64,000 bases of DNA, from positions 52,142,001-52,206,000 of the forward strand of contig NC_083223.1 in the NCBI RefSeq assembly GCF_032191835.1. The letters run 5' to 3'. Below, piece by piece: positions 9,883 to 64,000 of this stretch. The position numbers were made by a program, and so were the translations under genes. Numbering within the stretch: the stretch's first letter is position 1; each line of letters starts with the position of its first letter. The notes under the pieces are model-generated. The model had not been told where the DNA came from. It did no database searches and saw only the letters and a program-made list of their open reading frames with translations. The DNA comes from Heteronotia binoei (Eukaryota).

Positions 9883-18081
<8,199 letters not shown>

Positions 18082-35679: not shown

Positions 35680-35810
35680 GTTCGTTTTCCCGCCCTGTGA
35701 GAGGAGAGAAACAGGCGTGTGCAAGAATATACATTCTCCCTGCCGGGTGGGGATATTAATACGCTTGCGCGCTAGTTGCTTCTTGCGGCGGTGAGCTTTT
35801 CCCGCCAATA
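35680..35810 (+). promoter_or_regulatory. CpG-rich segment with E2F-like TTTTCCCGCC motifs
   Basis: TTTTCCCGCC at about 35685 and 35797; the second is retained in copy B (about 60366). Confidence 0.45.
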
Positions 35811-36534: not shown

Positions 36535-36558
36535 ATGACCTGTGAGTTGTTAAACTGA
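36535..36558 (+). promoter_or_regulatory. 7-codon uORF upstream of RNASEH1-A Met1
   Basis: ATG ACC TGT GAG TTG TTA AAC TGA, 3 nt after a strong acceptor (ttttgttttatag, AG 36530-36531); the paralog keeps the same start, length and stop. Confidence 0.6.
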
Positions 36559-36604
36559 ATAAAGTTGACTTGAGTGGGGTGAGGCTGCAGGGAAAGTAGG
36601 GATC

Positions 36605-36720
36605 ATGCTGTACTGGGCCTTGGGCTGGTTAATTCACCCTCGTTTTCTCCCCAGCAGTTGCAGCGGGAACATGTTCTATGCTGTGCGCAAAGGCAGGAGG
36701 CCAGGAGTGTATTCATCCTG
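36605..36720 (+). CDS. RNASEH1: RNASEH1-A first coding exon (mitochondrial leader plus start of HBD)
   Basis: In-frame ATGs at 36605 and 36671; donor TG|GTAAGC. Confidence 0.9.
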
Positions 36721-39700
36721 GTAAGCAGCCAAACAGAAGGTGGAGCACCAGATACCCTGCCCCCCCTTCTTGTTTCTTCCCCAGTTCCCTGAACTTATTA
36801 AATCTGTTTCCCATTGATTTGGTGAACTCAGTGGAGTATATTTCTGAGGAAATGTTTAGCCTTTCTTCTTCAGAAGTCATCAAACAACTTTGGTTCCTTG
36901 TTTCTTGAGAGTATCAGTGCCCTGGTGTTCAGATGACACAAAGAGATCCCAAGCTACAACATGTCACCCAGGATGTTGTCCTAACCCCATTAAGTGTTGT
37001 CACTGAGAGTATGTTCATTGTGCTTAGTTTAACAACAGTGTACAAAGAATAAAACCGGTTAGAAATCAGTTTGAAAGAACTGGAGTTCCCCCTCCCACCC
37101 ACAATGAACTATCTAATTTGTGCATTTGTTTGGGTATTTATTTCTCTGTTTTCTTTTCTCCATTTTATCTTTAGAATAACCTTGTGAGGTAGGTTACACT
37201 GATAGAATGTAACTGGCCTAAGAACACATCAGACTTCCATGGCATAAGAACATAAGAGAAGCCATGTTGGATCAGGCCAACGGCCCATCCAGTCCAACAC
37301 TCTGTGTCACACAGTGGCAAAAAATTTTATATATACACACACACTGTGGCTAATAGCCACTGATGGACCTGTGCTCATATTTTTATCTAAACCCCTCTTG
37401 AAGGTGGCTATACTTGTGGCTGCCACCACCTCCTGTGGCAGTGAATTCCACATGTTAATCACCCCTTGGGTGAAGAAGTACTTCCTTTTATCCGTTTTAA
37501 CCTGTCTGCTCAGCAATTTCATCGAATGCCCACGAGTTCTTGTATTGTGAGAAAGGGAGAAAAGTACTTATTTCTCTGCTTTCTCCATCCCATGCATTAT
37601 CTTGTAAACCTCTATCATGTCACCCCGCAGTCGACGTTTCTCCAAGCTAAAGAGTCCCAAGCGTTTCAACCTTTCTTCATAGGGAAAGTGCTCCAGCCCT
37701 TTAATCATTCTAGTTGCCCTTCTCTGGACTTTCTCCAATGCTATAATATCCTTTTTGAGGTGCGGCGACCAGAACTGCACACAGAACTCCAAATGAGACC
37801 GCACCATCGATTTATACAGGGGCATTATGATACTGGCTGATTTGTTTTCAATTCCCTTCCTAATAATTCCCAGCATGGCGTTGGCCTTTTTTATTGCAAA
37901 CGCACACTGTCTTGACATTTTCAGTGAGTTATCTACCATGACCCCAAGATCTCTCTCTTGGTCAGTCTCTGCCAGTTCACACCCCATCAACTTGTATTTG
38001 TAGCTGGGATTCTTGGCCCCAATGTGCATTACTTTGCACTTGGCCACATTGAACCGCATCTGCCACGTTGACGCCCACTCACCCAGCCTCAACAGATCCC
38101 TTTGGAGTGCCTCACAATCCTCTCTGGTTCTCACCACCCTGAACAATTTAGTGTCATCCGCAAACTTGGCCGCTTCACTGCTCACTCCCAACTCTAAATC
38201 ATTTATGAACAAGTTAAAGAGCATGGGACCCAGTACCGAGCCCTGCGGCACCACACTGCTTACCATCCTCCACTGCGAAGACTGCCCATTTATACTCACT
38301 CTGGCAGAATGGGGATTCAAACCTGTGGCCCCCAAATATCACTCTTAACCTCTACACTGACTCTTTTTTGTTGTTAACATTGGAAGTTAGGACCACATGA
38401 TCTCAGTAAGGGCCAAGCTGTGGTGCCTGCCATTTTAGAAATGAATTTGACCATTTAAAAAATGCAGCCCTTGTGGCATGTTTTTGAATGGTCATATTCT
38501 TCTCTAAAATGGCATCAGTGGCCACAGATAGAACTCATGGGGTACTGTTTGCTCCTGACTTTCAAGAGTATAAAAGTGCTTTGGAAACCTTTTATAGTTC
38601 ACACTAATTGTTAAATAGTTAAATAATAGTTTAGTGTTACAAATTGGAGAGATGGTGATGAATTGAAATTACTGCCTGCTGTGTAGGGGCTTGAGTGTGG
38701 CTTGATGGCTGGAAGCTGTGTGCCTCTTTCCTCCCATTATCCAGGACTGGGATGTTGGCTCAGGTATTCTTGCTGTTTTATTTAGATTGTCTGTGCTCTA
38801 GCTTATATTGTTTGCTAGTACGTGTTCTTCAACTTAATATAGGTTGGTCTCCCCATACTCTTCCTATAGTACAAAGCAAAATATAGATAGTGCCCAAGTG
38901 TACATATGTACCCCCCACTGCTTTTCAAGTGTACGTATACATTTCTTACTGCCCCCCCAGCCCTGCTTTTTAATCACAATTAGTATGAAATTAATCAGGG
39001 TGAGAAATGTAAATAACTTTAAATATGGGAAGGGATTTTCAGGGTCATGGAATCCTGGCGTTTAGCTGCTCCCTGCCCTCCTTCTAAACGCCTTTATCAC
39101 ATAGCTTGTTTTGCCATTTACATCTTTATGTCTTTATAGGGATGAATGTAGAGACCAAGTTGATGGATACGGGTATGCTAGTTTCAGAAAATTTGAAAGT
39201 GAGGAAGATGCTTGGGACTTTGCAAATGGCGAGTCATCGAGATCAACAGGTAACTCTCACAGAAAGAACTGGTGGTTGGCAGATACATGGAACTGGGCAT
39301 GATGTATTCCACTGAAAATACATCTTGTTATCAGACCATACCTGCTAGCAGCGTAATGGACTGGTCATATATCTGATAGAATGTTCCTTCTATTTTTCTT
39401 CAGATGGTGTCAGTTGAATGCTCAGTTACATAATTTAAGTAAATTGTTATTCTGAAGTTTTGGTTGAGTTACTGTTGTACTAAAAATAGCTTTTTAAAAA
39501 GTGAAATGTTTAGATCTATTTAATAGGAAAAAATCAGTTTAAAATACCCACTAAAAAGTTAAAGCTAGAAGAAAAAGGCATAGGCATGTATTCTGAAGAT
39601 TATAACACTTCTCTGTGGTTAAAGTGATCTGAAAAATCTTACAAGAGAGCTACCAGGTTATATCTTTACATGACATTTTTCCCCATATAGATACATTCTC

Positions 39701-42700
39701 CACCCCACCCCATTTTCTGGGAGCCTGTTTCACAGTGTAGGAGGCAGAATAGAAAAGCAAGGATGGTATGATCTATGAGCTTGGTCTGCTATATAAACTT
39801 AATCAAGACACATTCCCACTGGTTGCAAGAAATAGACAAGAAATTTTCTAGTCTTGGCCCAGCGAAGGACGGTATATTGGGACTTCAGAAAAGTGAATCT
39901 TTACGATTGAAAAATTTATAAACGATCTATATCACTTTATCACAGTTATACGAGCTTGGAGAGTATGCTCAACCAATTTTTTTCTTTTTTTGCATTTTTC
40001 CATCTGTAATCACTCTAGGCTATGTAAAATTTTTAGCAGTTCCTTGTTACCATAAAGCATTTATGCTCATGCATTTGAATGCTGCCCTTTCAGCTGTCCT
40101 GTATGGGAGATATTGTAATTATCTTATTCAGACAGGCTTTGCCAGTGTGGCCTGAAAAGGGTTGACTCCTTGCCCTACATGACACTGGAATGTCTATTAT
40201 AATTTCTATCCTGAGTTATGGATTGCCCCTATTTTAACAAAATTACCATCTACCTTATCAAAAGATAGGTCTTGACCTGGATAGCTCTGGCAAACCCAAT
40301 CTTGTCAGATCTCAGAAGCTAAACAGGGCCAACCCCGGCAAGTATTTGGATGGGAGACCTCCAGAGGATACCAAAGTCAGGAAGCAGAGGCAGCCTATCA
40401 AGCCACTTCTCTGAATGTCCTCCATGCCCCAGTAGGAGTCTCCAGAGGCTGCCATGACTTACAGGCACAGGGGCACAAACAGACACACGCATGTGAATAC
40501 ACACACAAATTTACAAAAAGATAACACATTCCCTTATCTGTTGATGGATAGAGAGCTAAGGACTTAGCTGAATGTGGTCAAGTATCTCTCCACCACATTT
40601 TCCTTAAAGAAGTTGAAAAGGAACAGACTAGCTGATTCCAGGCAGGCTGTCTTAAGCAGAAACATTCAGTAGGTAGTAGCCTGAGGGTAGTAGCTTGGGC
40701 ACGGAAGCAGTCCTTGAGATAAATACATACCACTAAAATAGGAAAGTTCCAGTGAAATGGGCCATTCAGTTGAGAAGCTAGAAAACCAGAATTGCATTTA
40801 TGTGTACACTTCAATGAAAATTAATCCCACCAAACTCGTTCAGAGGAAACAGGTGAAGTTTGGCTGCAAGTCTGATAAGTTACAGTTCTAAAGTGATTGG
40901 GATCTCGGTCTTTCACTTCTGGTGAGTAGCTCGCTTTGCATAGAAGGTTCTGTTCTTACTGAAAACCTCTGTTGCATAATACAATATATTCCCTTTATAC
41001 TGGGAATGTTGACAGGAGATACAAGGAATACAGATGCATGACTACCTGGTGACCCAGTGGTTGTTACTGAAGGTGCACTTTATGCTTGTCTTCCTAGTAT
41101 TGTAGCACGTGCATGCTACAGCCCTCCTACTTTAGAGTGTGATGCTTCACTAACTTGTTTGTCAAGCTAGTTTAGTCTGATATATGTCAGAAAGATGTGC
41201 TCTGAAATTCACTGTCATTATAATCTCTGGACAAAATTTGAGTCCAGTGGCACCTTTAAGTCCACCAAAGATGTGCCAGGTATAAGCATCACTTCTTGGA
41301 TACATTTACACATCAATATATCCAATATTTGTTTGCTTCACTATGATTTCCCAGATAATTAAATCCAAACAAATGGTGACTATAAACTAAGCTTGTTAGA
41401 CAGTGGGGTGACAGCAGAGGAGCCATATGGGTAGCAAAGGCTGCACATTATAGTATATGTGCCTTTTCCTTGACATAGTTCAATGGTTGAGCAAAAGAAA
41501 GGTCATAGCAGAGGTGAGTCTTAAAGACAGATTTGAGAGAGAGACATTTTGTCAGGTCTAGAATTCAATTTAATTCTACTGAGGAAAACTGAAAATGAAA
41601 CAATTTTTTTATTGACTAATAACAGAAGGACATATGCATTTGTACAGAAGTTCACTTTAGGGCAAGTGAAAAATTAGAAATGTGGAAATATGTTTTATGC
41701 CCAAGTAGAAAGAATTAATTTCTAACCTGTATCTCGAAGAGTTTATGAGCCATTGTATTTATGATTGTATTTCTGAATTAAAAAATTAAGCAAGGTAAGC
41801 AAAATACAAATTTATGTTCATAGGACGCTATACAGATGTTTATACTGATGGATGTTGTTCAAATAATGGACGCCGTGATGCACGTGCTGGAACAGGAGTC
41901 TATTGGGGACCTGATCATCCTCTGTAAGTACAATCCCATGATAATTAGATAACATTTCTTAAAATTCAGTCTCTGTAACAGTTTCAAGAATTGCAAATCA
42001 ACACTTTGGATTTCTGTACCCAAATGACTGCTTTATGTCATTGACTCTCTGACGACTGCAAAATCCATTTGAACCAATAATGCTGAACTTAGTACCTCCC
42101 ATCATTAGTTATAATTAAAGTAAAGAAATGGATAAATATGTACTCAGAAGTGCTACATTAGGTAAAGTCGGGACCCAAGTTTAAGAAATTAAGCTTTCTT
42201 GTCCCACTGTGTTTGATATATAAATGTACTATGCAACTATTTAAATATTAAAATTTTTAGTGTATTGTATGTTGAAAGCAGCTAAATTAGTGTTGTGAGT
42301 TCAGAACTTCTACTTAAAACAGCTAATATTTCTGTTCATGTCTTGCAAATTATTATGAAGCGCCTGCTCCGTTGGGCTATTGTGCTCCTTTCTTTCTATC
42401 ATACATTCCTGTTGCTGTTGAAATAACCTGCTTTTCCCCTCAGTAGAAAGTGGGTATGAAACTTACTTTTGTTTGGTTCAATTTCTGCCTAGCCCTTCCC
42501 GTAAACAGGCTCAGAGCAGGTTACAACATTGGTTTAAAAGAATAAGTCAAACATTATCCCTAACCAAATGGTGTTCAGACTATTTAAGCTATTTTCCTAC
42601 ATCCCAATGGTATTCAGTTCAGAAAAAGATGGTAAGTGCTCTACTTTCAGCGGTAGTAACAAGACTTTATAAGAAATAATAACAAATGATAACAGGAGGG

Positions 42701-45700
42701 ACCAGATGGTATTTGACATCTGCTGCCTCACCCAAAAGCCTAGTGAAATAGCTCAATTTAACAGCCCCTGTGGAACTATAAAAGGTCCAAAGGGCTCTGA
42801 TCTCTAGTGGCAACTTATTCCACCAGGTTGGGACCAGGGCCGAAAACGCTGTGGACCTAGTTGAGGCTAGGCAGATGTCTTTTGGGCCAGGGATAACCAG
42901 TAAGTGTTGTTTAATGAACGCAAAGCTCAACAAGGCACATATAAGGAGAGGCAGTCCCATAGGTATGTTGGTCCCTGGCCACTCAGGGCCTTAAAGGTAA
43001 TGCCAGCACCTTGAACCAAGCTTGGAATTCTTTCTACAGCCAGTGCAGTTTGTGGAGCACAGGCTGAATGTGTGCCTGTGAAGCCTTCAGCAAATTAAGG
43101 TCTCTGGGCCCAGATAAGCTATCTGGGCCCAGAAACCTTAATAGAAAATCCATTCCACATTTTCCTTGCAACTTTGTGCTGCAGTGTGTTTCAATGGAGT
43201 GGAACTCAGTTTCACTTTCTAGTGTTCCTATGACCAGCTGAAGTTGTTGCCTTCTGAAGTTGTGTCCTTGCAAATAAAGGGTTGATGCTTTGAACCAGCT
43301 TGTCTTTGCTGAATTGACCTGAGAACTGGTGCCTAGTGAGTACTCTAACCTGGGAACCCTCAGCCAAAGAGGGATATTACACTGGAGAGCAATTGCCAAT
43401 CTGAGTAGACAGAAGGATGGGGGGGGGGGGGGGGAGAAGCTTGCAAGGCCCAGCCATTTCATGTTTTCCTAGTTTCAGAATTTTATAGATTTTGTTTCTG
43501 TTGTGATCCTTGTGCTTTTTCTAGATGATTGATTTTTAAAATTGCATTGCCAAATCCCACTATTCCCCCACTTTTCCATTTTAAACAAAATATTGCAAGA
43601 GTTTTTTGTGAGTTTGTATTTTAAGTAAAGAATATATTTTTATTGTGTTTGTCTGTGTCATTTATAAAGTTTATATTTCCACTACCTGGTATTACATATT
43701 ATGACATGCATGGCGTGGCCCCACAAAGCCCCCCATTTATGTCAGATCTGGCCCTCCTAACAAATGAGTTTGACACTCCTGATCTAGTCAAATGGGTCTC
43801 CTGGTGAAGACATTTACAGCCCTTGAACTAATCTCACTATACCAGATAGATCCAGGTTGCGTAGCTGTCTTGGTCTGAAGCACGAGAACAGATTTTGAGT
43901 CCAGTGGCACCTTAAGACCAACAAAAGTTTATTCAGGGTATGAGCTTTCGTGTGCACACACACTTTTTCAGATACATAGAAATGTAACACCATACCAGGT
44001 CATACTCCCTTCTCCCCATTTGTGTATCCTAAATTTACAGTTCTGACACTCTTCACCCAAATGATAAACTTCTCATCCTTAATCAGGGTAACTGAGAACC
44101 ATGGACACCTATAAGCCATCCAGCTTCTCCTGAAAGTTTGTTTTCTCTCTGGAATACCCTTCAAGGTGTTGTTTTAGAGCTGACATGTCAGCATTTGTCC
44201 AAGGAAACATTTTTTCCTAGAAAAATAGCACCCATCTCCAGAGTTGTGTGTATGCAATGTAGGTATGCCATCCTTGCATGCTTGTAATTGTTTTTTTAAA
44301 AATTAAATGAACAGTTGTATGATGAGTTTTATTTACATTATTTATAGCCTGCTTTTCTCACTGGGACTCAAGGCAGATTACACAAAGTGAGTGAATACAG
44401 TCAACAGGATGGGACAATACAATCAACAGGATTTGAGTTGCAAAACCCATAAGAAATCCAAAAAAGCAAAATTGAAGCAAAGCATAGGTGTTAACATGAC
44501 ACATAAAATGATGAAAAATTACATAGCAGAATCCAATATACCACACACTCAACATAATATAAACCACAGTCATTAATCGTTTGTCCATGTAACTTTGTGA
44601 AACATTGTACAGTACTATCCTATTGCCTACATAGAAAAGCCCTCTTGAATAATTCAGTTTGGCATAGTTTGCAGAAAGCCAGAAGAGTTGGAGCATTCCT
44701 GACCTCTTTAGGCAGTCTACTCCACAAGGTCACAGCAGAAAAGGGATGTGTATGAGCAGTTTTTGATTTTGCCCATTTGTAGGTTACCTGCACAGGGCCC
44801 TGTTCAGATGAGCAAAGCTGTCATGGTGGAGCAAGGAGGAGAGACAGTGTTGCAGAGATTAGGGTACAAGACCATGAAGGGTTTTGTATGTGACAGCCAG
44901 TACTTTAAATGGAGCCCCATAATTGATGGGCAGAATGGGAGTAATATGCATGCTCCAACTAGGTCCCTGTAATAACTGAGCTGCAGCATTCTGTCCCTAT
45001 CATAAAATCCAACTAAAAATAACTATTTGTGTAACTTTCTACTGCAAAGACAATTTAGTATTTAATTGTTCCATAAAAATAATTTCTGATCAGATGATTT
45101 TTTTTATTTCTATTTTTTTTGCAGAAATGTTAGTGAGAGACTTCCTGGGCGGCAAACTAATCAAAGAGCTGAAATAAATGTAAGTTGCAGTACAAAATTT
45201 ACAAGACCTGTGTTATCCCAACTTCCTGATTTGCATGGGGATTTGCTCTTTTGCTCCCCTGAAAGATGATTTACTACTGGTAACACTTTAAGATTTATGT
45301 TAACAGACATTGCCAAATTATAGTTTGGTGTTTTATTAACAATACCGCAGCTTATATACTTTATCTTCCCATATGCAGTGTTGTTTGTGGCAATCCAGTT
45401 TGTCAGTGCAAATTAACTGGAAACTCTGTGGTTGGTGCTTGCCCTCCAAAGCAGAATCAGAAGCTACAACTTGGTCGTGGCTTCTAAGTCTGGCTTGGAG
45501 ACTAAACACTTATTTAGTTTGCCAGTTCAGATGGAATAGTAATCTGTAGCATCCTATGAAATGGGAAGGGGACTGCAGGGGGAGTAGGGAGCATGTCAGC
45601 TGACACTAAGCCACTATAAGATGATTGTTTAATCACCCATTAGGAAAATAGAATATTTTCATGGAGCACTATAGTGGATCATATAGTTGATAAATGCATG

Positions 45701-47781
45701 AATTGACTCACATGCCTCAAGTGGCCAAAGAGAGAGGTCTATAACAGAAGCCTCCTGTAAAGGATACAGTAAATAAATGACCGTGTATTCATTGTCCTTG
45801 GGGTAACTTCCTATGACATGTTATAAATGGTTCTGTTTAATCTCCTGAGTTGTGTTTTTGCCAAATATATATATATATATATATTCAGGCAGCTACCAGG
45901 GCTGTACAGCAAGCTAGAAGTCAAAATATCACGAAACTGAATATCCATACTGACAGCAAGTTCACCATTGATGGTAAGCAGTTGGGTTTTTTGATTATAG
46001 TAAATTTATACATTGCCCTATTACATAATACACAGTGAGCAGTGGAGACCTGTGAAGACAAGCAAGGGAAGGGGAAATCCTTGCTGTCTCAGCCGCTGTC
46101 ATTTCCGACCTTCCTGTCTCCCTGTTTCCCTTACCTTTCTGGCTTTGCCTGTTTCTGACCTGTTTCTGCCAGGGTTAGCTCAGTAGTGTGGTGGAAAATA
46201 ACTCATTGTGATTTGTAGATAACGGTATTTTTACTGGTAAATTGATGATGTGATTTAGGTCATACTAATAAGCCAACAGGTTAATGTAACATGTCTATTA
46301 ATTTGAAGCTATTGACCATAAAATCATTTGTTGAGAAGAACTGGGACAAGAGGTACCTATAGGCCTACAGTTTTTTCTGTTCTTTCTCCATCTAGCCATT
46401 TCATGCACATCTGGATTTATCCTCTTTCAGCTTGCCATATGCAGTTCCAAACAAGGAGCTGGCAGTGGGTGAGCTCTACAGTTGGCTAGGCAGAAACTGA
46501 AATTAGTTCTGAAAACTGGTAGGGCCCATTTGTGTTTGAAGCTAATGGTAATATCCTGTCAACTGTGACCATTGTAAAACAGGCCAGTAAGCAACTGAGG
46601 ATTTTAGCATATATAGAATTGTTATTTTGAACATGGACTGAACAGCTTGAGAGAACCCGTCCTCTTCCAACTAGCGTTCACAGTTAGGGTGAACAGGAGA
46701 AACTGCTTAGGAGGAGGTCACTCTCAAGACATTTAGCCTCATGGCATGGAAGACCAGTTGTAAAAGGACACTGACTTAAATAGAACAAGACTTACAGTAA
46801 CTTCCTAAGCAGAGATGCAACCTTTTAAATCAAAGTCAGTGAGTTTACATTGGTGTTACTCAGGATGGCACTGTTCTTCTTTATTTCCTGTCTTTAAAAT
46901 GGCAGGCTAACTGCATTTTATTTGCAGAGTGTGAGGATAAATTCATTACAGGTTCATTAAATGTCCAGATGTAGCCTGTTTGCCTTTTGAAACATCTCAG
47001 CTGGATGGCATTTTATGGATGCTGTGAGATCATTTCTGCTAATCTTTTAAAAAGATATGATCTAGCTACCGTCTTAAAAAAGGATCCTTTTTTATTCTGT
47101 AGGTATGACAAAGTGGGTTCCAAACTGGGAGCGTAATGGTTGGAAAACCAGCACCGGGAAAGATGTAGTCAACAAAGAGGACTTTCAAAGGCTTACTAAC
47201 CTTTCAGAAGGCATGGACATCAAATGGGTATGTAACAAAACTGCTGATGGAGTAAAGAATGAATACATATCTTTAAAATGCAAATCCTGCAACAGAGTAT
47301 GAGCGATTTGTTTGTGTAGTCATGATATTCACAATAACAATATAAATATATATTTATACCAATATAAGAGGTTAGAATGAGGGTGTTTCAGTTCCTTAGA
47401 AGGAAGCTGCCCATCATTCTGGCCCTTATCTTTTCAGCTGTGTTTCCTTGAGATGAAAGAATAAAGTTAGTTTCACAGCTGTAGATAGAGTTGCTGGAAA
47501 GAGGTAGAAAATGTATTCTCGCTTAAAATAAGAAAGAATTGCACTTTGTTCCCAAAATAATAAAACGATATTAAAGCATTGACAATTAGTAGTGGTGTTT
47601 GTAGCAGATGTTGTAGATTAGTAGTAGATGTTCTAGACAAATGCTAGTGATTGCTGTTTGCCATACACTTTTAGTTACTTTGGAAACTTCTTGTCAACAG
47701 ACCCATGTTCCAGGTCATGCAGGATGTAAGGGAAATGAAGCTGCTGATCGTCTTGCAAGAGAAGGAGCTGGAAAACCCTGA
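36605..47781 (+). CDS. RNASEH1: Ribonuclease H1 copy A, join(36605-36720,39140-39249,41824-41923,45125-45179,45889-45973,47103-47227,47701-47781), 223 aa (201 aa from Met23 at 36671)
   Basis: The frame is open across 7 GT-AG exons: leader [69 protein letters not shown], and catalytic domain with YTDG, RAE, TDS, HVPGH, AADRLA. It is divergent to RPS7, as in other vertebrates. Confidence 0.95.
37245..38301 (-). mobile_element. 5'-truncated CR1 LINE (RT C-terminal part) in RNASEH1-A intron
   Basis: ORF with [17 protein letters not shown] and [11 protein letters not shown] motifs; (TTCTTATG) tail; TGGCA direct repeat at 37240-37244 and 38302-38306; absent in copy B. Confidence 0.95.
39140..39249 (+). 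CDS. RNASEH1: RNASEH1-A coding exon 2 (HBD)
   Basis: tctttatag|G GAT GAA TGT...ACA G|gtaact; [36 protein letters not shown]. Confidence 0.93.
40275..40515 (+). mobile_element. 5S rRNA-derived SINE (SINE3-like)
   Basis: cttgtcagatctcagaagctaaacagggcc...gtatttggatgggagacc resembles the 5S internal promoter region; (CA)-rich tail. Confidence 0.8.
41824..41923 (+). CDS. RNASEH1: RNASEH1-A first catalytic exon
   Basis: (G)[33 protein letters not shown], 100 nt, donor GTAAGT. Confidence 0.96.
42680..43090 (-). mobile_element. L2/CR1-clade LINE 3' fragment
   Basis: Minus-strand [17 protein letters not shown] motif typical of the ORF2 C-terminus. Confidence 0.65.
44330..45000 (-). mobile_element. 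Degraded L2-like LINE 3' fragment
   Basis: gtgtaatctgccttgagtcccagtgagaaaagcaggctataaat-type tail on the minus strand and a gtggagtagactgcc motif. Confidence 0.55.
45125..45179 (+). CDS. RNASEH1: RNASEH1-A exon containing the catalytic Glu
   Basis: [18 protein letters not shown], 55 nt. Confidence 0.96.
45865..45884. repeat. (AT)10 microsatellite inside a 3' splice site
   Basis: gtttttgccaa(at)10tcag|GCA. Confidence 0.9.
45889..45973 (+). CDS. RNASEH1: RNASEH1-A exon containing the second catalytic Asp
   Basis: [29 protein letters not shown], 85 nt. Confidence 0.95.
47103..47227 (+). CDS. RNASEH1: RNASEH1-A basic-protrusion exon
   Basis: [42 protein letters not shown], 125 nt. Confidence 0.96.
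47701..47781 (+). CDS. RNASEH1: RNASEH1-A last coding exon
   Basis: [29 protein letters not shown]. Confidence 0.96.
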   Translation, partial: THVPGHAGCKGNEAADRLAREGAGKP

Positions 47782-48140
47782 TCATAGTGTTTTGGAATTA
47801 CAAAGTTCCTTAAGAGTTCTCTGGCTGTAATAACAATATGGGTTTGTTAACCTGTGTCAGCATTTCTAGTTAACATGCATTTTTTGTTGCATCTCTGCCC
47901 AGCTTTGATGATACGTGAGAAGACTCACAAGTGCATACTTTTCCCTATTCTGTAGAGGCATTTTCAAGGTTCTAATTGAAATTAATTCAATTTATGTTGG
48001 AATTAAACTGCTTCATGTTTTTAGGCAGCACTTTTCCATACTTCACAGCTGCAAATTTGTTTTTAAACGTTGTAATTCTAGCTATTTTAGAAGTGTCCGT
48101 AGGATGCTGAACAACAGTATGTTTTCCCATTGAGCTTTGA

Positions 48141-48146
48141 AATAAA
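48141..48146 (+). terminator. Probable RNASEH1-A polyadenylation signal
   Basis: First AATAAA about 360 nt after the stop codon. Confidence 0.55.
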
Positions 48147-48576
48147 AATTTTTGCTTTTACTCTGTGGCATTTTTGCAATTTAGTCTTTATAGGTGAGGC
48201 CATGCAACACAAAAAAAAATACAAACCCCAAAGTTTACCCCTACTATGCACGAAAGTGCAAAATGTCAATGATCAATAACAACACAGTGATCATAAACTT
48301 ACTTTACATTTATTTAAGGTTTGTCCAATCAGTTTCAGTCCACTTAATCACAAGAATCACAGTTTGAGTGTAGTATTCAGCTAGCTGGCAATGTTATGCA
48401 CAGCAAGCATCAGTCTTCTATAATGATAAAAGGATACATGTGCCTGTGGCAGGCATAACTCGACAGTAATAAAGATAGGAGTTCCACAATCAGCCATCAG
48501 CTTAAGAATGATCATGGTGTTGCATTGCCATAAATGAAGAGAAATGGAACATCCTTACTCGGTATGCTCTTTACAT

Positions 48577-52450: not shown

Positions 52451-53020
52451 ACAGCAGCAAAAAAAGCAAAAAAAAACGTGTACAAGAAATAAATATATTC
52501 CAAAAATATTATAGACTCTGTGTCAATTTCTGAAACACTTAGAGATACCATGTAACACACTAAAAAAGTTTCTTTCACTACAGAGAAGATGCAGTCCTCA
52601 CTGAGCTTGTGCCTAATGTAAATGCAATAAGATTTTTTTGCTTGATGTCAACTTGTGAATATTACAGAACAGTAAGACACTTTAAAATGCGAAACGTGGC
52701 CTGAAGTCAACTGACACGTAAGGAACACTTCTATCCCAAATATTTATTTTTCCTTTGGAGCTGAGAGGATTGTTGGATTCCACACAGAGTGTTTGGAAAA
52801 GTGCAAAGATTTGTTGTGAACATGGACTTTATGTGCAAAAGGACTGCATCTTCTCTGTAGTGAAAGAAACTGGTTTTTTACTGTGTTATGTGATATCTCT
52901 AAGTGTTAAAGAAATTGACACAGAGTCAATAATATTTTGGAATATATTTCTTTATTGTACACAGTTTTTTGTTTTTTTCCCTGCTGTTCTTTACTGTGTT
53001 GCCACTTGCTTTTCCCTGTT
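52451..53020. mobile_element. Fold-back insertion with arms of about 147 bp, specific to copy B
   Basis: 52451-52597 is the imperfect reverse complement of 52841-52987; copy A is uninterrupted at about 22735. Confidence 0.8.
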
Positions 53021-54069
53021 AACAGCAGTGGCAGGTAGCTGAGCTAGTCACTCTTCAGAAGCACTGGTCAAATGCTGTTCATGAGGACCAGTGCTTCTTA
53101 GCAGCATGCCTTAAACTGGCTGACTCTTTCTCCTTGCTGCTAACAAACATGGTAGTGTTGCAGTTCCCTAGTCCAAGGGTGTTTGTGTTATGGGTCTGCA
53201 GAATACAAAACCCTGGCAATGTGAACCTTCGCATACCAGTCTGACAAGCTGCCATAAGCCCCTTTTACTACCCCAGCAGTCAGAAGCCAAGAGGCAAGCT
53301 TCTGATCTTCTCAGGACTAAACAAGAAAGTCAGCCCTGTAAGGTTGGATACTTGCAGAAATGAGTTTCCACAAACAATTAACCTGCTAGGTGAGCGCTTG
53401 GCCTAGGAACTGGAATTAGGATTGAAGCCACTTGAACACAAAAGACCACAGCATAGATTTATTAAAACTGTGCAAGAATATTGCAAAAGAGAATAAGCAG
53501 TGAGGAATCAAAACAACATAGCTAATTATAAGAGACTAACTACACAAAAAGACTTTGGTTTAAAACAAGAATACAAACTGCAAGACATTACTATTCCATA
53601 GTTGCTCAGCAAGAAAAGTCCAGAGCTTCCATGGGCAGGTTTCAAAGATCACATCCAAAATCAAGAAGCAAGAAGCTACATATGCCTTGCCAGTTGCTAA
53701 TTGAAAAGGCTAACCCTTAAAACCAAAGGATCCAACATGATTTGGGCCCATAAACAAGTCAGAACCTTGGCTCATTATGTCAGTGCTAGTGTTACTAAAA
53801 GTATGTGACCTAAGGATGCTATCTGCAGACTAGTCCAACCATTTCTCACATGTGCTAACAGCACAAATCATAATGTCTAGCTGAATGGAATGTGGCTAAT
53901 TGGTTATCATGGTGTCATTTCATCCTTGGAAGGGAGTTAGAGTTAGAGATAGAAGCATTCCTCCCTCCACCTGGCTGTTATCTAGTCATGAGGTCAGCTT
54001 TGCTGTGTCCTCCCAGCAACAATTATTTTCCCACTTAAACTTTTCAGCTCAATCTGCAGCCTACAGTCA

Positions 54070-54971
54070 GGGTGGTGAGAACCAGAAAGGATTGTGAGGA
54101 ACTCCAAAGGGATCTGTTGAGGCTGGGTGAGTGGGCGTCAACGTGGCAGATGCGGTTCAATGTGGCCAAGTGCAAAGTAATGCACATTGGGGCCAAGAAT
54201 CCCAGCTACAAATACAAGTTGATGGGGTGTGAACTGGCAGAGACTGACCAAGAGAGAGATCTTGGGGTCGTGGTAGATAACTCACTGAAAATGTCAAGAC
54301 AGTGTGCGTTTGCAATAAAAAAGGCCAACGCCATGCTGGGAATTATTAGGAAGGGAAGTGAAAACAAATCAGCCAGTATCATAATGCCCCTGTATAAATC
54401 GATGGTGCGGTCTCATTTGGAGTACTGTGTGCAGTTCTGGTCGCCGCACCTCAAAAAGGATATTATAGCATTGGAGAAAGTCCAGAGAAGGGCAACTAGA
54501 ATGATTAAAGGGCTGGAGCACTTTCCCTATGAAGAAAGGTTGAAACGCTTGGGACTCTTTAGCTTGGAGAAACGTCGACTGTGGGGTGACATGATAGAGG
54601 TTTACGAGATAATGCATGGGATGGAGAAAGTAGAGAAAGAAGTACTTTTCTCCCTTTCTCACAATACAAGAACTCGTGGGCATTCGATGAAATTGCTGAG
54701 CAGAAAGGTTAAAACGGATAAAAGGAAGTACTTCTTCACCCAAAGGGTGATTGACATGTGGAATTCACTGCCACAGGAGGTGGTGGCGGCCACAAGTATA
54801 GCCACCTTCAAGAGGGGTTTAGATAAAAATATGGAGCACAGGTCCATTAGTGGCTATTAGCCACAGTGTATGTGTGTATATAAAATTTTTTGCCACTGTG
54901 TGACACAGAGTGTTGGACTTGATGGGCCGTTGGCCTGATCCAAAATGGCTTCTCTTATGTTCTTATGTTCT
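54070..54971 (+). mobile_element. 5'-truncated CR1 LINE
   Basis: 262-aa ORF of CR1 ORF2 C-terminus and (TCTTATGT)n tail; copy A has the empty site at about 23785. Confidence 0.95.
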
Positions 54972-55545
54972 AACCAAGCCTGAACTAATGTTTGAAAGAA
55001 CAAGGAAGTAGGCAAGGATTTCAGTCCCTTTGACAGGTAGAGTTTTTAATGTGGAGTCCAAGAGAGAAGTGTGTATATGGAAAGCCAGCTTTGCATTGGT
55101 CAAATGCATTTGGAGTTTATTCTCATAGAACAGAATGCCCCCCAACCCCAGTTGTATTGTAGAATGGGTAGCCACTTTTCTACCCTATTGCATCTAGCAA
55201 TTGAATCTTCTTAGAAGTAAATACCCTGATACTTAAATGCAAGCCCCCTGGTGGTTATTCCACCACTGTTCACTTCAAGGGCCCTGAAACCACTTGCTCT
55301 GGCCCTGACCAAATGAGGAACAATCTGTTTTAAGAAGGGTTACCACTCACATGGAAGCTAAATCGGCCTTGAGATTTGACAATTGACAGGGCATGACAAG
55401 GACTGGCAGCACTTAAATGTCTTGTAGCGATATAGTGTAATGCACTAGTGAACAGAGTGGCAGAGGAGGACCTGGGTTCAAATTCTTACTTCTGCCATGG
55501 AAGCTCAATGGGTGACCTTGGCCTCATCTCAAACTCAGCCTAGCC

Positions 55546-56116
55546 CAGGCGTGTCAAACTCATTTATTATGCGGGATGGATCTGACATAAATGAGACCTT
55601 GTTGGGCCGGGCAATTTGTGTACCTATTTAAGATTAGGAGAACAGGTATAAACTTTATAAAGGACACAAACATAATTAAAGTGTTTTGTTTTTTTAAAAA
55701 CCCTTAAAATAAAACATGCTTAAAACATCAGCATGTGTTGGTCTTAAAGGTGCTTTCCTTGTATTTCTCCCATGGGATCCAGACAACTGAGCAAAGGAAG
55801 CTCTGGCTCTTTCCTTCCTTCCCAGGGGACCAGGAGGGGGAGGAGCCTCAGCCAATAGAAGGAAGAGAGGCTTGGCTCAGTAGCTCTGCTACTGGCAAAG
55901 CAAGCTCTCCCTCTCCACCTTCTCCCAAGGGAGGAACCTCAGCCAATGGAGAAAATAGTAGCTCCTGTGCAACTGAGCAAGACTTGCAAAGCAAGCTGTT
56001 ATTGCAGAAGGAAGCAAGAGAGAGGGAGAAGGAAGCAGATGACATTCAGTTTCTCAGGGACCTGATAGGAGCCCTCCAGGGACCTGATTTGGCCCTTGGG
56101 CTGCATGTTTGACACC
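55546..56116. mobile_element. hAT MITE of the same family
   Basis: caggcgtgtcaaactcattt...gcatgtttgacacc. Confidence 0.8.
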
Positions 56117-58187
56117 AATGACAAAACTTTTTGTGCTGCCAAAATTTCAAAATTCAATGACAAAATCTTGTGATGCCAAGGTTTCTTTCTTTTAAGTCCT
56201 AGCTTCCAAAGATACATAAATTCCTCACTGAGATTTGCAGATGATAGGGTTGTTGCCAATCCCCAGGTGGGGCAACACACAAGAACACTGCATATACCAC
56301 TTTCACAATATATATGCACTTTTATGTGATGAACCTTATATGCTGCTTATTGGTACTGGATATTTATTTTTTGTGTAATATCATTTCTATAGTTCTGAGC
56401 ATTTTGTGGCTTGATAAAGACTTCAAAAGAAACATGTGTGTAAACTCTACTTGAAGAGCAGTTAGCTGCCTCTTTGAAGTTTTTTTCCTGTATCTCTGTG
56501 AGAGACTTTCTCCCTTTTGGCTCCAGCACCTTGGCATCAATTTGGAAGAAGGCTCCGTTTTCTTCAGGATCAACACAAGTGTATTATAGGAACAACTGTC
56601 TTCCTTCTAGATTAATGAGGGACTGAGCCTTTTATGTTAATTTGTTTTGGAGTGTATGTGGCTGATATAAATGGTTTATTATTTCAAGTGCAAAGATTGT
56701 TACTAGTTTGTATAAAGGAGAATGATATAGAAAAAATACAACAGAAAATATAACAAAATTGAGAAGTAGTAAAGTGCATATATATTGTGAAAGTGGTACA
56801 TGCGGTGTTCTTGTGTGTTGCTCCATCTCCTCAGCAGTTTCTGTGTGTTGCTTAATCCCCAGGTGGGTGCAGGGGATCCCCCGGTTTGGAGGCCCTCCCC
56901 GCTTCAGGATAATCAGAAAGCAGGGGGTGGGGAGGGAAATGACTGCTAGGCACTCCATTATTTTCTATGGAGACCGATTTTCATGGGGTATAATGGAGAA
57001 TTGATTTGCGGTATCTGGGGCTCGGGGGGGGGCTGTTTTTTGAGGTAGAGACACCAAATCTGCAGCATAGCATCTGATGGCTCTCCTAAAAAACCCCCAC
57101 CACGTTTCAAAAAGATTGGATCAGGGGGTCCAATTCTATGAGCCCCAAAAGAAGGTGCCCCTATCCTTTCCAATGGAGGGAAGGCATTTAAAATGTTTGC
57201 AATCCCTTCACATGTGATGGCCAGAACTGCCTTTGGAATTCAATTGTGCTTGTCACAATCTTGCTCCTGGCTCCACCCCCAACGTCTCCTGGCTCCACCC
57301 CCAAAGTATTTCTTGAATTGGACTTGGCAACCCTAAACAGATGACAACCCATCAAATGGTTCAATTGATATATGAATCCAGTCCTCCTCCTTTCTTTCTT
57401 CCTACTGCAATAGAATTTGGATCCACAGACCCAGCTTCTTCAATAAATCAAAATAATACATTTCAAAATGCCCCCGCTTTGATCTCAATGCTATTTATGC
57501 ATACTTTCCTGGCAGTAAGCCCTGTTAAACACAATGGCACTTACAGCAAATGAGCGAGCACATGGTTGTGCAGAAAGAAGCTTTTGTGATGGTTCATTTA
57601 TTTAAATAAAAATCAAAATGACAATCAGGGGCCCAAATTATTGACAGGTCAAGAAACTATGTTTGGCTAAAGATCCAGATGGGCAGCTGTATTGTTCTGA
57701 AACAACAGAACCAAGTTTTATTCCAGTGGCACCTTTAACACCAACAAAGTTTAATTTGGGGTATAAGATTTCGTATCTGAAGTATTGCCTGTGCACAAAA
57801 ACTTGTACCCACAAACTTTGTTGCTCTTAAAGGGGCTTAAACTTCATTTTGTGTTTGAGTATATTCCACAAATTTAGCCGCTATGTTATGCCGATGGAAG
57901 AAGAATACAATAAGGGCCTAGACAGTAGCACCTTTAAGACCAACAAAGGTATAAGCTTTTGTATATCACACATACGCACTTCTTCAGTTCACTTCACAAG
58001 GAAGTTTATGCTTGAATAAAACGTTGTTGATCTTAAAGGTGCAGCTGGACTTCTACTTTATTCTGTTGCTTCAGACCAAGATGGCTACCCACTTGGATCT
58101 ATCTTCGATGGAAGAAGAGTTCAGGGGAGTCTTGTGGCACTTGAAAGGCAACCCACTCCTTCATACACCAGGAATGAAGTCTCATAG

Positions 58188-58904
58188 TGTGGCAGCAGGC
58201 ATAGGATCAATAGAAACATGCTTAGAAATTATGTAATCAGCTAAGAAACTATAATCAATATTAAGAATAGGATCAATAGGGCAGAGGTGAAAAGCTTTAA
58301 TGTCATGCAAAAGGGCATCTGTGCTTCTATGTATTACGAAAGGCCTCCACGTAGTCTATAGTTACTAAAAAGGAGAACTAAGAGCAGCTCGCTACGGATG
58401 GCTTGCAACCGCAAACAGTACTGTAACCGAAGCTTATAACCACGGTGGTTAGTGCATAGGAAGCAAGCTTACAAAGGCCCCTTGAATCACCGGTGTAGCA
58501 AAGTACACAAGAAGCAATATTGCATCAATATTCCGTGTTGGGTGGGAAAGTCCCAAACGGTCCAGTGTTATTAGAGATGCTTGCATTCTGTAACCTAGGC
58601 CTCGCGATCATAAATCATCACCAGTGCAGGAGGACATGGGGCCAACAGCGTATGTTTCGTAAGCCAGCACTGTATGTTTTGTAATCATGTGACATTTGAT
58701 GGAATATAACTTTGAACGATATAAAAGCTCGTGATTTTTCTGTAATCCGGGTTCAGACTCTCACCTTTGTGGCAGAAGCCATGGGAGTCTGTTCCCGTAC
58801 GTACGTATATTAATAAACTGAAAGCTGTTTTCCTGAATACGCCTCAGGCCTCCTCTGTCATTGAACCAGCTTTAACGAATTGAGGCAGGGGTCTTCCTGC
58901 TACA
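58188..58904 (+). mobile_element. Solo LTR, 717 bp
   Basis: TGTGGCAG...CTGCTACA termini, 4-bp TSD ATAG (58184-58187 and 58905-58908), TATAAAA 58720-58726, AATAAA 58812-58817; empty site in copy A at about 33646. Confidence 0.9.
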
Positions 58905-61234
58905 ATAGCACCTGGAGTCCTGTGCATGTATGATGGTTTGGAACGTCCTGCTGTAGCAACGGATCACCAGATCTTTCCACCCCAGACCTCTGACGGAATT
59001 CGAGAGCTACGAGTTAAAAGAGAGAAATAAATTGGCGGGAAGGGATTTTTGCTCTCTTCCAAAAACTCCCCCACCTCCACCTTGCTCTTTGTAAATGAGC
59101 CAGAACCAACAAAATCAAAAGGGGGAAATTCTAGAAAAGACAGAGTACTTCATGCTTGTTCCTGGAAAGGCCCTCTAGCGCTTTCTCTTTAGCTGTCCCC
59201 CTTTCTTTTGCTTCTTCTGTGGTTCTTCCCAGTGGTCTTAAAAGCACAGAGAGGAGGAGCATCTTCATCGCTTTTTTGCTTCTTTAAGAGGGCAGTAGTA
59301 TTTGTTGCACTCTTCGGACCTACGAAGACGGTAAGTACGAGGAGGGAGACAAAAGGCAGAGCCAGAACTGAGGTCTGGATACAAGAAAAATACATTTGAG
59401 TTATAACTGTGTCTCTCTTGCAATGTATGAGGTCAGGTATTTATTTCACAATTGGAAAGGTGCTGCAGTCGCAGAGCTACTTCGGTGAACATCTGTGGCT
59501 TCTTCCTTCCATTCTCCTGATCACGTTAACTAACCTGATTCCTTTTCTCGAGCCTTTTTTTTTTTCCTTTTTGAGGGGGAAAAGCAAGATTTTGGTTTAA
59601 TGATAAAATCCGAGGTTGTTCTTTTCCAGAAAAATCTAACTTCAGTTTCGCTTTCGTCTTGGCTCGATGTTTTGTGTCTGTTTGGTTGGTCTTAATAAAA
59701 AGCACGCCACATATATTTCTTTTTGAAGTTTACATGATGTGAATATACAAAACAGCCGTTTCCCTTGTCTTTTCACCGCTGGCTCCGTTTTATACGTCCA
59801 TTCACATCCATATTAATCCGTCGAAGATTGTTTTTGAGTAGGGGGAGGAGGCGATATCTGAAAGGCACGAGTGACGTTTACTTTTTTGACCAAGTCATTA
59901 GGCTTGCATTCCAGCAGCTTGGTTGAGAGTCGGGATGAAAAGTCTCTAGAAGAGCGCAGACCTTCTTTCTTTTGGAAAGTGAGGTGCTCTTGAGTTCGGT
60001 GAACCTTTCCACGGAGTAAGCGCGCGTGGCTGGCTATGGTGCAGTTGTATGGAGAGCTCCCTGCGTGCTTTCCTGCAGAAGTGGGGTCCACGGAGTTCAG
60101 GGATTTGTTCTCAGGTGCACCGATTTGCAGCCCGAGAGAAATGGGGGTGGTGGTGGCTTTTCTTTGTAAATGATCAGATTGGTAAATTCGCCTGGTGTAA
60201 AGAATGTACGAAGTACTTACTGGCTTGGAATATGCATAGTACTTTCTTTAGAATGAGGATTCGTTGTTGTCAAGAAAGAACCGGGAACGCCAGGCTCATT
60301 TTCCCTGCTAGGATGGAGGGCTATTAATACACTTGGGCACCAGTTGCTTTGGCCTCTGCTAATAGTTTTCCCGCCAGTAGAGTTGGCGCTTGTAAGCCGC
60401 CCTGAGCCCGCTTTGGTGGGGTAGGGCGGGATATAAATCGAACAAATAAATAAGCTGTGATCGCACACACAAAATAATGCACTTTCAATGCACTTCCCAA
60501 CTGAGTTTTGCCAGTTCAGACAGTAAAATCCAGTTGGAAAGTGCGCTAAAAGTGAATTGAAAGTGCATTATTTTGTATGTGTGATCACAACCGTAGTTCC
60601 ACTTCCTGTTCCTTGATACTGCCGTGTGCGAGGCAGTATAATAGTTCAGAAAAAAACGCTGCTCTACTTCTAGAAATAGAACAACCAAACCATATAAAAC
60701 ATACAGATAGGAATCTTCATCATGCCACTGTGGCCACAAGGAAAAAGTAATTTAAAAAGGATGATGGGAATAAGGTTTTATTATGACAATTATAATTCAA
60801 GAAGCATTTTAAGGTGGATGGTGAGCTTGATATAATTTAGCACACCTTCACCTCTTTTTCTACGAAATTACCCCTGCTCAGAAGTAATCTTAATCTTGAA
60901 GTATCAGGAATGGCTGAGTACTTCTGTAGCCATTTTCTACAAAATCTCTCTGGCTTTGCATACTTTGGACAGTTTTGTGGGGGAAAACATTAGAAAGTTT
61001 GTCAAATCTTTGAGTTCAGCAAAATTCTCACAGGGGGTTTGAACTATGGAGCCCAGAAGCAAAGTTTTTGGGGGGGGGGGTAAGAAAGAAAGAGCACAAT
61101 AACATAGAGGTTCCGGAGCTCCACTCCTGTGACCTGCCCAAAATGAGGCCTGCTTCTGAGTAGTTGTTGCCAAAAGCTGTGCTGTAGATGTGGCAAACAT
61201 GTTTTACTGTGATTTTATTTTTGTTTTATAGCGT

Positions 61235-61258
61235 ATGGCCTATGGGCTGTTAAACTGA
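61235..61258 (+). promoter_or_regulatory. 7-codon uORF of RNASEH1 copy B
   Basis: ATG GCC TAT GGG CTG TTA AAC TGA after acceptor tttatag at 61230-61231. Confidence 0.55.
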
Positions 61259-61335
61259 ATGGGCTGAGGCTTCAGGGAAGGTGTGGATTGTGCTTTGCCT
61301 GCTTGATTCACCCTTGTTTTCTCTACAGCAGGAAC

Positions 61336-62996
61336 ATGCCTTATGGTGTGCGCAACGGCAGGAAGACAGGAGTGTATTCATCCTGGTAAGCAGCCGAAGG
61401 TGGATGGTCTGGTACTCTGCCCCCTCCCCTCTTAATTCTGCCCTGCGGGTTGCATCAAAGGTGTTCCCTATACTTAAAACTGTTATCCATTGATTTGGTG
61501 AGCTCAGTGAAGTTTATTTCTGAGGAAATGTCCCTTCTTGTGGTTAGATTTTACACCTTTCTTCATCAGAAGTCATCAAACAATTTGGGTTCCTCGTTTC
61601 TTGAGAACATCAGTGCCCTGGTGTTCAGATGACAAAGATCCTGAGCTGTCACATGTCAGCCGGGATGTTGTCTTAACTTTTCATGCTAAGTGTTGTCACT
61701 GAGAGTATTGTTCATTGTGCTCAGTTGAAAAACAATATACAATGGGGAAAAACAGGTTAGAAATGAAGTTTGAAACAAGTGTGGTCCCCCCTCCCCCCAC
61801 AATGAGCTCTTATTTGTGCTCATTTCTTTGGGTATTTACTTCCCTGTTTTGTCCTCTTTTCCAATTTATCTTCAGAACAATCTTGTGAGGTAGGTTATGC
61901 TGAAAGAATGCAACCGCCCTAAGATGATACATCAGGCTTCCATGGCAAAGTGGGGATTCAGACGTGGCCCCCAAATATCACTGTGCACTGATTCTTTTTG
62001 GGGGTTAACATTGGAAGTAAGGGCCAAGCTAGATGTTACAGCAACCAGAGGTTTCACCTGTGTCTGCTGCCATTTTAGGAATGAATTTGACCATTTAAAA
62101 AATGCAGTCCTCATGGCATGTTTTTGAATGGTTGTATTCTTTAAAATATAGCAGAGGTGGCCAACGGTAGCTCTCCAGATCCTTTTTTTTTTTTTTTGCC
62201 TACAACTTCCATCAGCCACAGCCAGCATGGCCAATGGGGCTGAAGGGCGTTGTAGGCGAAAAAACATCTGGAGAGCTGTCGTTGGCCACCCCTGACATAT
62301 CGTTTTGCTCTAAGAGGGAAGAAGTGCTTTGGAAACCTTTTATAGTTCATGCTGATTATTAAATGGTTAAATAATTAGTGGGGATGAATTGAAATTACTG
62401 GCTTTTGAGTAGGGGCTTGAATGTGTCTTGATGGCTTGAAGCTGGTTACCTGGATTCTGAATCTAGCTGCAGTTTCCTCTCCTTCCATTAGTCAGGACTG
62501 GGATGCTGGCTCAGGCATTCTTCTGTTTTATTTAGTTTGTCTGTGCTCTAGCTTATATTGCTTGTTAGTACATGTTCTTCTACAAATTATAGGTTGATCT
62601 CCCCAGACTTCCTATAGTACAAAACAAAGTATAGAAACTGCCAAAGCGTACAAATGGATTTCTTACAGTCTCTCCCCCCTCCCACCCCTGCTTTTGAATC
62701 ACAACCAAAATTAACTAGGGTGATAAATACAAATAACTGTAAATATGGGAAGGGATTCTCAGGGGAATTGAATCCTGGAGGGGTGGTGGGGCAGGGTGCT
62801 TAGCTGCTCCCCGTCCTTCTAAAAGCCTTTATCGCACAGCTTGTTTTGCCATTTACCCCGTAATCTCTTTATAGGGATGACTGTAGAGAGCAAGTGGATG
62901 GATACCGAAATGCTAGTTTCAGAAAATTTGACACAGATGAAGCTGCTAGGGACTTCGCAAGTGGCGGGTCATCACAATATGCATCACAATCCACAA
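61336..62996 (+). CDS. RNASEH1: RNASEH1 paralog copy B, partial: join(61336-61385,62875-62996); the catalytic exons would lie beyond the window end
   Basis: MPYGVRNGRKTGVYSSW / DDCREQVDGYRNASFRKFDTDEAARDFASGGSSQYASQST. The frame is open with intact AG/GT sites, and the flanking introns align with copy A. Functional versus pseudogene status cannot be resolved here. Confidence 0.8.
62152..62294. mobile_element. Palindromic MITE (same family as 702-840)
   Basis: cagaggtggccaacggtagctctccagat...gttggccacccctg. Confidence 0.8.
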
Positions 62997-64000
62997 GTAA
63001 GTCTTGCAGAAAGAACTGGTGCTTGGCAGATACATGGAAGTGGGCATGATGTATTCCACTGTAAATATGTCTTAGTAGGAGACCATGACAGCTAGCAGGA
63101 AAGAAAGGAAAGAAATATGCCTGGTTGATGCCAGGCAGGTTTTCTTAAGCAGAGGAGCAAACTCAGGTAGTATTTGGAGCATGGAGATGGTCCTTGAGAT
63201 AAATACATACCACTAAACTGAGAATAGGGAAGTTCTACTGAAATTCACCACTCATAGTCTGAGAAGCTTGAAAATCAGAGCTGCATTTATATGTACACTT
63301 CAGTGAAAATTAATCCCACTGAAGTCATTCAGAGGAACAGGTGAAGTCTGACAAGTCACAGTCTTAGTGCTTCAGATTTGGGTCTTTCACTTCTGATGAC
63401 GATCTCACTTTGCATGGAAGGTTCTGTTCATACTGAAAACCTCTGTTGCATAATATAGTATCTTCCCTTTATACTGGGCATCTTGGTGGGAGATACAAGG
63501 AATACAGATGTTTGACTACCTTGTGATCCAGTGGTTTTTACTGAAGGTGCTCCTCATACTTGTCTTTCTAGTATTGTAAGAGATGCTTTGACCTGTGCAT
63601 GCTGCAGCCCTCCTGCTTTAGAGTCAAGCCAGTTTAGTCTGGTCTGTCAGAAAGATGTGCTCTGAAATTCACTGTCGCAATTATCTCTAAACAAAATTTG
63701 AGTCCAGTGGCACCTTTAAGACCAAGAAAGTTTTATAAGCTTTCAATCATCACTACCTGGGTGCATTTACACACCAGTCTCCAATTTTGATATATTTATT
63801 TGCTTCATTATGTTTCCTCAAGAATTACATCCAACAAATGCTGACCATATAAACTAAGCTTTTTATTCTTTGCATCTTTTAAACATCTTCATTATGTTAT
63901 ATGCTGATTGCTGCTCACCTACTACCTATACATATGGAATGGTAACTTCCATTTCAGTGTATCTGAAGAAGTCTTAAGTGCACACAAAAGCTTATATCTT

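Follow-up and report, generated by a model that had tools for sequence, protein, structure and literature searches.

Animals are described as making both a mitochondrial and a nuclear ribonuclease (RNase) H1 from a single gene, RNASEH1, whose transcript carries an upstream open reading frame (uORF) and two in-frame AUGs, the canonical design in vertebrates and insects (PMC6433063, citing Suzuki et al. 2010), and in the mouse the mitochondrial role of the enzyme, in the replication of mitochondrial DNA, is essential (PMC9410905). In animals examined to date, the gene occurs as one copy and is essential, and the use of one messenger RNA for both roles makes them hard to separate. In Arabidopsis, gene duplication has produced the RNase H1 proteins RNH1A, RNH1B and RNH1C, which are nuclear, mitochondrial and plastid, respectively (bioRxiv 10.1101/662080). 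Here, a stretch of 64,000 nucleotides (nt) from Heteronotia binoei, Bynoe's gecko (NC_083223.1, positions 52,142,001 to 52,206,000, forward strand; referred to as the window), was analyzed, in which this normally single-copy gene forms part of a tandem array of three, named A, B, and C. The order on the chromosome (CM063325.1, to which the window is 100% identical) is RPS7 (minus strand), A, B, and C; the window, at about 52.142–52.206 Mb, contains A and the first part of B, the first two array members, and C lies outside it, starting about 21 kb past the stop codon of B. The data indicate that B is probably an intact and selectively kept, compact RNase H1 that has no mitochondrial start, and that it sits in an array in which C is the canonical gene.

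The array agrees with canonical RNASEH1 in its family, exon structure, and domains, in the catalytic DEDD residues and conserved histidine, in having RPS7 as its neighbor, and in exon lengths of 110, 100, 55, 85, and 125 nt, which are identical in Gekko and Eublepharis. It departs from that design in comprising three genes and in the features of B, which is without the first AUG, the leader frame, and the linker exon; within the array, the canonical arrangement is matched only by C. As with RNH1A, RNH1B, and RNH1C of Arabidopsis, the duplicated genes differ in N-terminal targeting, with a conserved leader in C, a decayed one in A, and none in B. In contrast to the plant genes, the gecko copies represent an independent event in a vertebrate, the connection domain has been lost from A and B, and their localization is deduced from sequence only. 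No paper on gecko RNASEH1 duplicates was found in the literature searched, and all three genes bear the automatic NCBI annotation "ribonuclease H1-like".

Squamate RNase H1 proteins were gathered with the A exon at 47103–47227 as the query. The products of B (P0289) and A (P0291) were found with a linker-less query (P0194) and were not among the matches listed for the linker-containing queries P0006 and P0201, which ranked them below the best 120. Over 12,665 and 31,111 nt, respectively, their loci L005 and L006 match the window at 100% identity, so that B could be traced past the window end; coordinates beyond 64000 are window-equivalent positions obtained via L005.

Mapping of P0289 places the seven coding exons of B on the plus strand at 61336–61385, 62875–62996, 65414–65513, 67263–67317, 68912–68996, 70363–70487, and 70911–70997. 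All seven are flanked by AG and GT, their lengths are canonical, and the product comprises 207 residues. The first coding exon as a whole spans 61232–61385, with a proposed acceptor AG at 61230–61231, a short open reading frame (ORF) at 61235–61258, a GTG at 61290, the predicted start ATG at 61336, and a donor after 61385 that reads TG followed by gtaagc. Exon 2 (62875–62996), which encodes the second half of the hybrid-binding domain, has an open frame with an in-frame tandem duplication of 12 nt, and its acceptor as well as the donors of both exons are intact. Intron 2 begins at 62997 and continues past the window end (62997–64000 lies inside it), P0289 mapping exactly onto L005. An earlier note, made from the window alone, had proposed that stops, frameshifts, or missing catalytic exons downstream of 64000 would make B a pseudogene; the exons were followed across that boundary, and no such defects were encountered.

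The first part of P0289 corresponds exactly to exons 1 and 2 of B and is followed by the full catalytic domain; a stretch of about 15 residues connects this to the hybrid-binding domain. Both domains are recognized by their profiles: the hybrid-binding domain (PF01693, Cauli_VI) scores 65.7 bits in B, 67.8 in A, and 68.9 in C (P0163), with a cut-off of 21, and the type 1 RNase_H catalytic domain (PF00075) scores 141.2 bits in both B and A. B aligns with the human RNase H1 structures 2qk9 and 6vrd (E = 7e-72), and none of the DEDD residues, the conserved histidine, or the motifs YTDG, QRAEI, HTDS, HVPGH, and AADHLA is missing from it. At the contact residues of the human hybrid-binding domain (Y, W, F, and K), the aligned residues of B are identical. 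A change from W to R in the hybrid-binding domain of B was considered as a mark of decay and dismissed, as the RNase H1 of Pelodiscus has the same change. Some bacterial RNases H, such as that of Bacillus halodurans (about 196 residues), likewise carry a hybrid-binding domain at the N-terminus, linked to the catalytic domain by a short segment; these enzymes are of bacterial lineage, and B resembles them in compact architecture only.

The loss of the mitochondrial start in B is documented by alignment. In A, the ATG at 36605 is in frame with that at 36671 (Met23) through a 22-codon leader, as the earlier note had described. The codon of B aligned to the first ATG is GTG (61290–61292), and deletions of 11 nt (frameshifting) and 9 nt in the former leader have reduced the spacer to 46 nt, compared to 66 in A, so that the GTG and the ATG at 61336 no longer share a frame; the alignment thereby bears out the same note's account of B. 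An ATG occupies the first position in A, C, Gekko, and Eublepharis, and its presence in C and the two other geckos indicates that it is ancestral and was lost by B. Two in-frame AUGs around a presequence are found in full in C and are lacking in B; A has both AUGs in frame but a leader beginning with MLYW.

The region further upstream is shared by A and B and has been replaced relative to the other genes: beyond about position −35 from the first ATG, it is AT-rich, CpG-poor, and non-homologous to C and Gekko. The elements that the earlier note listed as kept in B (acceptor, uORF, nuclear ATG, donor, and an open next exon) are all present, but the short ORF cannot be equated with the ancestral uORF. 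This ORF of seven codons, common to A (36535–36558) and B (61235–61258), lies in AT-rich sequence without homology to the GC-rich 5′ untranslated region (UTR) of C and Gekko, which contains its own uORF, conserved between the two; the conserved 5′ UTR uORF that is a feature of eukaryotic RNASEH1, where it regulates the ratio of the isoforms, is therefore missing from A and B. A CpG-rich patch persists 0.7–1.7 kb further upstream in both copies. In B, it forms a promoter-like zone at 59500–60700 (plus strand) with an observed-to-expected (o/e) CpG ratio of 0.6–1.25, compared to a window average of 0.24, and is homologous to the upstream regions of A, C, and Gekko. A second, putative acceptor-like site (ttttctccccag / ttttctctacag) is located just 5′ of the second ATG, in addition to the proposed acceptor.

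The connection domain, another feature of eukaryotic RNase H1, which exon 3 encodes and which lies between the two other domains, is absent from both A and B, and the two copies lost the use of its exon in different ways. In A, neither a profile search nor tblastn recovered a linker exon, and about 880 nt of C (L004:13551–14433), including exon 3, have no counterpart at the corresponding site in intron 2 (41229–41396). In B, a dead relic of exon 3 remains in intron 2 on the plus strand (64510–64691; L005:13175–13356), where it is skipped in P0289; its donor has changed from GT to AT, and it has acquired indels of +1, −2, and +1 as well as in-frame stops. A single deletion of the linker exon common to A and B was thus rejected, since A deleted the exon and B retains the relic; an insertion upstream of exon 3 is shared by the two. 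The B-specific divergence of the relic, 10.9%, is about the neutral expectation since the split of A/B from C, and the relic provides a neutral reference from within the locus itself.

Linker-less RNASEH1 isoforms of 225–234 residues are predicted by automatic annotation in many sauropsids, namely Eublepharis (P0194), several birds (P0282–P0288), and Crotalus (P0175), and in a primate, Carlito (P0292), and exon-3 skipping may be a widespread natural isoform of RNASEH1. A and B have the architecture of these predictions, in which the hybrid-binding domain leads straight into the catalytic domain with the reading phase unchanged. The predictions are isoforms of single genes, whereas in A and B the skip of exon 3 is fixed in the DNA, by deletion in A and by decay to the relic in B. 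Paroedura picta provides another extra gekkonid copy, a "ribonuclease H1-like" protein of 265 residues (P0201) encoded by 798 nt at L001:10001–10798. It is the only conserved RNase H1 protein among the matches returned for Paroedura, and its annotated start is the nuclear Met. This copy is an intronless retrocopy with the linker kept, rather than tandem, intron-containing, or linker-less like A and B, and it was therefore rejected as an explanation of the A/B locus. With an in-frame ATG located some 72 nt further upstream, the retrocopy would gain a new basic N-terminus (MGLSKVSIRIF...).

Gene C (P0281/P0163, locus L004) has the conserved MLRR leader, two in-frame AUGs, the uORF shared with Gekko, and the linker exon; L004 is 72–81% identical to A. 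It is the only member of the array that combines the conserved leader, ancestral uORF, and linker exon with strong constraint. An intron tree has the topology (Eublepharis,(Gekko,(C,(A,B)))), supported at 98/98 and 80/86, which places the duplications in the Heteronotia lineage after the split from Gekko: first C from the ancestor of A and B, then A from B soon after. Self-comparison of the window reveals the old tandem duplication directly, with 22727–41398 around A matching 53015–63865 around B at about 74–78% identity in non-coding DNA.

To describe the constraint on each copy, omega (the ratio of nonsynonymous to synonymous rates) was determined per branch by parsimony over 201 shared codons. 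The stem of A and B carries 23 nonsynonymous and 5 synonymous changes, corresponding to an omega of 1.23 that is not significantly greater than 1 (P = 0.36). Values of 0.45 (27:16), 0.53 (24.5:12.5), and 0.17 (5:8) were obtained for the A, B, and C branches, respectively. Within B, the catalytic domain has an omega of 0.31 and the hybrid-binding domain one of 0.97. Given a neutral divergence of 8.6% in B and an intron indel rate of 0.0135 per nt, the probabilities that B would by chance have escaped any stop, escaped any frameshift, and kept 27 critical bases intact are 0.09, 0.004, and 0.09, or jointly about 3e-5; the same test applied to A yields about 5e-7. The joint probability and the omega of the catalytic domain together argue that B is a working gene and not a pseudogene. 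Selection has maintained its reading frame, with the gene structure and catalytic residues intact and the ancestral start lost, and the disabling changes that would mark an unprocessed pseudogene are limited to the former leader and exon 3.

Several observations nevertheless weigh against B as a functional enzyme and would fit a non-functional copy in early decay, possibly transcribed, with a frame left open by luck. Besides the lost first ATG and the frameshifted leader, exons 1 and 2 of B evolve at the intron rate and omega in the hybrid-binding domain is close to 1, and as a result the view of B limited to the window resembled decay (exons 1 and 2 of A also evolve at the intron rate). Of 128 tetrapod sequences, B has the hybrid-binding domain that scores lowest against the profile, the overall omega of B is only marginally below neutrality by counts of nonsynonymous and synonymous changes alone (P = 0.06), and no RNA run was listed for 61150–63100 in a search of sequencing runs. 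Decay would, however, have to account for an ORF across seven exons that has lost none of its 12 splice dinucleotides and none of its catalytic residues despite about 8.6% divergence and about 8 expected indels, and for a constrained catalytic domain at a locus where the unused exon 3 has collected three frameshifts, a dead donor, and stops; a copy kept open by luck is very unlikely. A different objection concerns the N-terminus. Upstream of 61336, the same frame runs for 41 codons without a stop (61213–61335), through the proposed acceptor, and encodes a basic peptide with K, R, and H and no acidic residues, so that B could gain a presequence from an additional 5′ exon or through initiation at a non-AUG codon. 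An N-terminally extended and possibly organelle-targeted isoform might then arise from an AUG in such an exon or from the in-frame CTG or TTG (as CUG or UUG starts). Since an open run of 41 codons has a chance probability of about 0.14, the NCBI model of B starts at 61336 with no longer product on record, and neither the homologous ancestral start nor its frame survives, production of this isoform appears quite unlikely.

The earlier note had also cast the two genes in the window as partners, with A as the ancestral-type gene making both isoforms and B as the nuclear or cytosolic one. Of this proposal, the loss of the ancestral mitochondrial start from an intact B stands; the role given to A is not supported, as the gene with the ancestral-type features is C. 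A retains its first ATG in frame with Met23, the sole indel of its leader relative to Gekko being an in-frame deletion of 9 nt, and its ORF is both under selection and transcribed. It is nonetheless a derived gene, without the linker exon, with an omega of 0.45 and a branch of 0.49 in the protein tree, compared to 0.04–0.18 in other geckos, and both arginines of the MLRR leader are gone from MLYW; Met23 is where the sole recorded product of A begins. With the conserved leader, ancestral uORF, linker exon, and an omega of 0.17 all found in a third gene, a partition between A and B alone is unlikely, and the dual-targeting partner in the array is most likely C.

A simple model for the kept, compact B would begin with an early duplicate of C in which the 5′ UTR was replaced, the linker exon was no longer used, and about 23 amino-acid replacements accrued at a near-neutral or faster rate. 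A further duplication of this ancestor would have produced A and B, after which B would have lost its first ATG (ATG to GTG) and the leader frame while keeping a 207-residue ORF from the former "nuclear" AUG. B would then be translated from 61336 and, without a mitochondrial presequence, would act as a nuclear or cytosolic compact RNA:DNA-hybrid endonuclease, with the essential mitochondrial isoform presumably supplied by C. Among the 23 replacements on the A/B stem are some at positions adjacent to the active site, namely Y to H (IYTDS), M to T (WMHVPGH), and F to C/Y. It is conceivable, as a tentative reading of these sequences, that A and B fix the exon-3-skipped isoform in DNA, B in addition the nuclear-only form, with C keeping the dual-targeted gene, and that the burst on the stem reflects a new specialization, perhaps of a nuclear nuclease whose hybrid substrates are R-loops or the replication intermediates of retroelements. 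More generally, the case would illustrate the partitioning of translational and splice isoforms after duplication. A canonical gene accompanied by two selectively maintained compact paralogs amounts to a natural set of separation-of-function variants, and the compact paralogs could be used to ask what the connection domain contributes and what a nuclear-only RNase H1 is able to do.

The complete structure of A is contained in the window. Its seven coding exons on the plus strand, with canonical splice sites, run from 36605–36720 to 47701–47781 and encode 223 residues from the first ATG; P0291 (201 residues) corresponds to A from Met23 at 36671. The first coding exon as proposed spans 36532–36720, with an AG at 36530–36531 and a donor after 36720, and exon 2 (39140–39249) supplies the latter half of the hybrid-binding domain. 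Catalytic exons follow at 41824–41923 (YTDGCC, with the first catalytic Asp), 45125–45179 (QRAEI, with the catalytic Glu), 45889–45973 (HTDS, with the second catalytic Asp), and 47103–47227 (the basic protrusion, NGWKT). The last exon and 3′ UTR (47701–48165) contain HVPGH and AADRLA, the stop codon at 47779–47781, and an AATAAA at about 48143. In comparisons of A, Gekko, and C, the exons of A change about 91% as fast as the introns. Sequencing runs of H. binoei were recovered with the last exon of A, and the RNA run X1 contains 87% of sampled 31-mers from this exon and the 3′ UTR, which indicates that A is transcribed. Two further RNA runs, X4 and X6, labeled as two other organisms, contain 33–42% of the last-exon 31-mers, which points to close relatives with nearly identical transcripts or to a mixing of samples.

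The leader change in A (36605–36616) replaced CGC CGG by TAC TGG, a CpG decay of the kind typical of CpG deamination. Coding exon 1 has a CpG o/e ratio of about 0.33–0.35 in A and B, compared to 0.72–0.87 in Gekko and Eublepharis, which fits an exon that has left its promoter CpG island, with decay of the A leader following. The CpG-rich, promoter-like patch 5′ of A is located at 35400–35900 (plus strand; o/e 0.9–1.0) and is homologous to Gekko L003:9232–9682, C L004:9231–9684, and B 60060–60305. Just 5′ of this patch, at 35039–35375, lies a tandem or overlapping direct repeat with an offset of about 73 nt and 78–79% identity.

In both A and B, the first 75 or so nt of intron 2 (39250–39330 in A, 62997–63075 in B; Gekko L003:11820–11900) are about 94% conserved among A, B, and Gekko, above the level of the flanking exon. 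The frame of exon 2 remains open through this stretch in both copies, one of them ending in …KSCRKNWCLADTWKWA before a stop. The stretch could be a splicing control element, or it could belong to a retained-intron isoform with the hybrid-binding domain alone.

Upstream of the array, the 5′ part of RPS7 and its CpG-island promoter region occupy 15251–20285 on the minus strand, with a CpG island at 19001–20000. This region has a collinear blastn match to Eublepharis L002:1–4460, where the minus-strand gene carries a Ribosomal_S7e domain (PF01251) and likewise lies upstream of RNASEH1, making RPS7 a conserved upstream neighbor. Two 3′ fragments of CR1-like long interspersed nuclear elements with reverse-transcriptase ORFs were also observed, at 37243–38142 (minus strand), in intron 1 of A, and at 54067–54967 (plus strand). 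The two are 97.9% identical, which points to recent insertion; older copies are found at 30752–31145.

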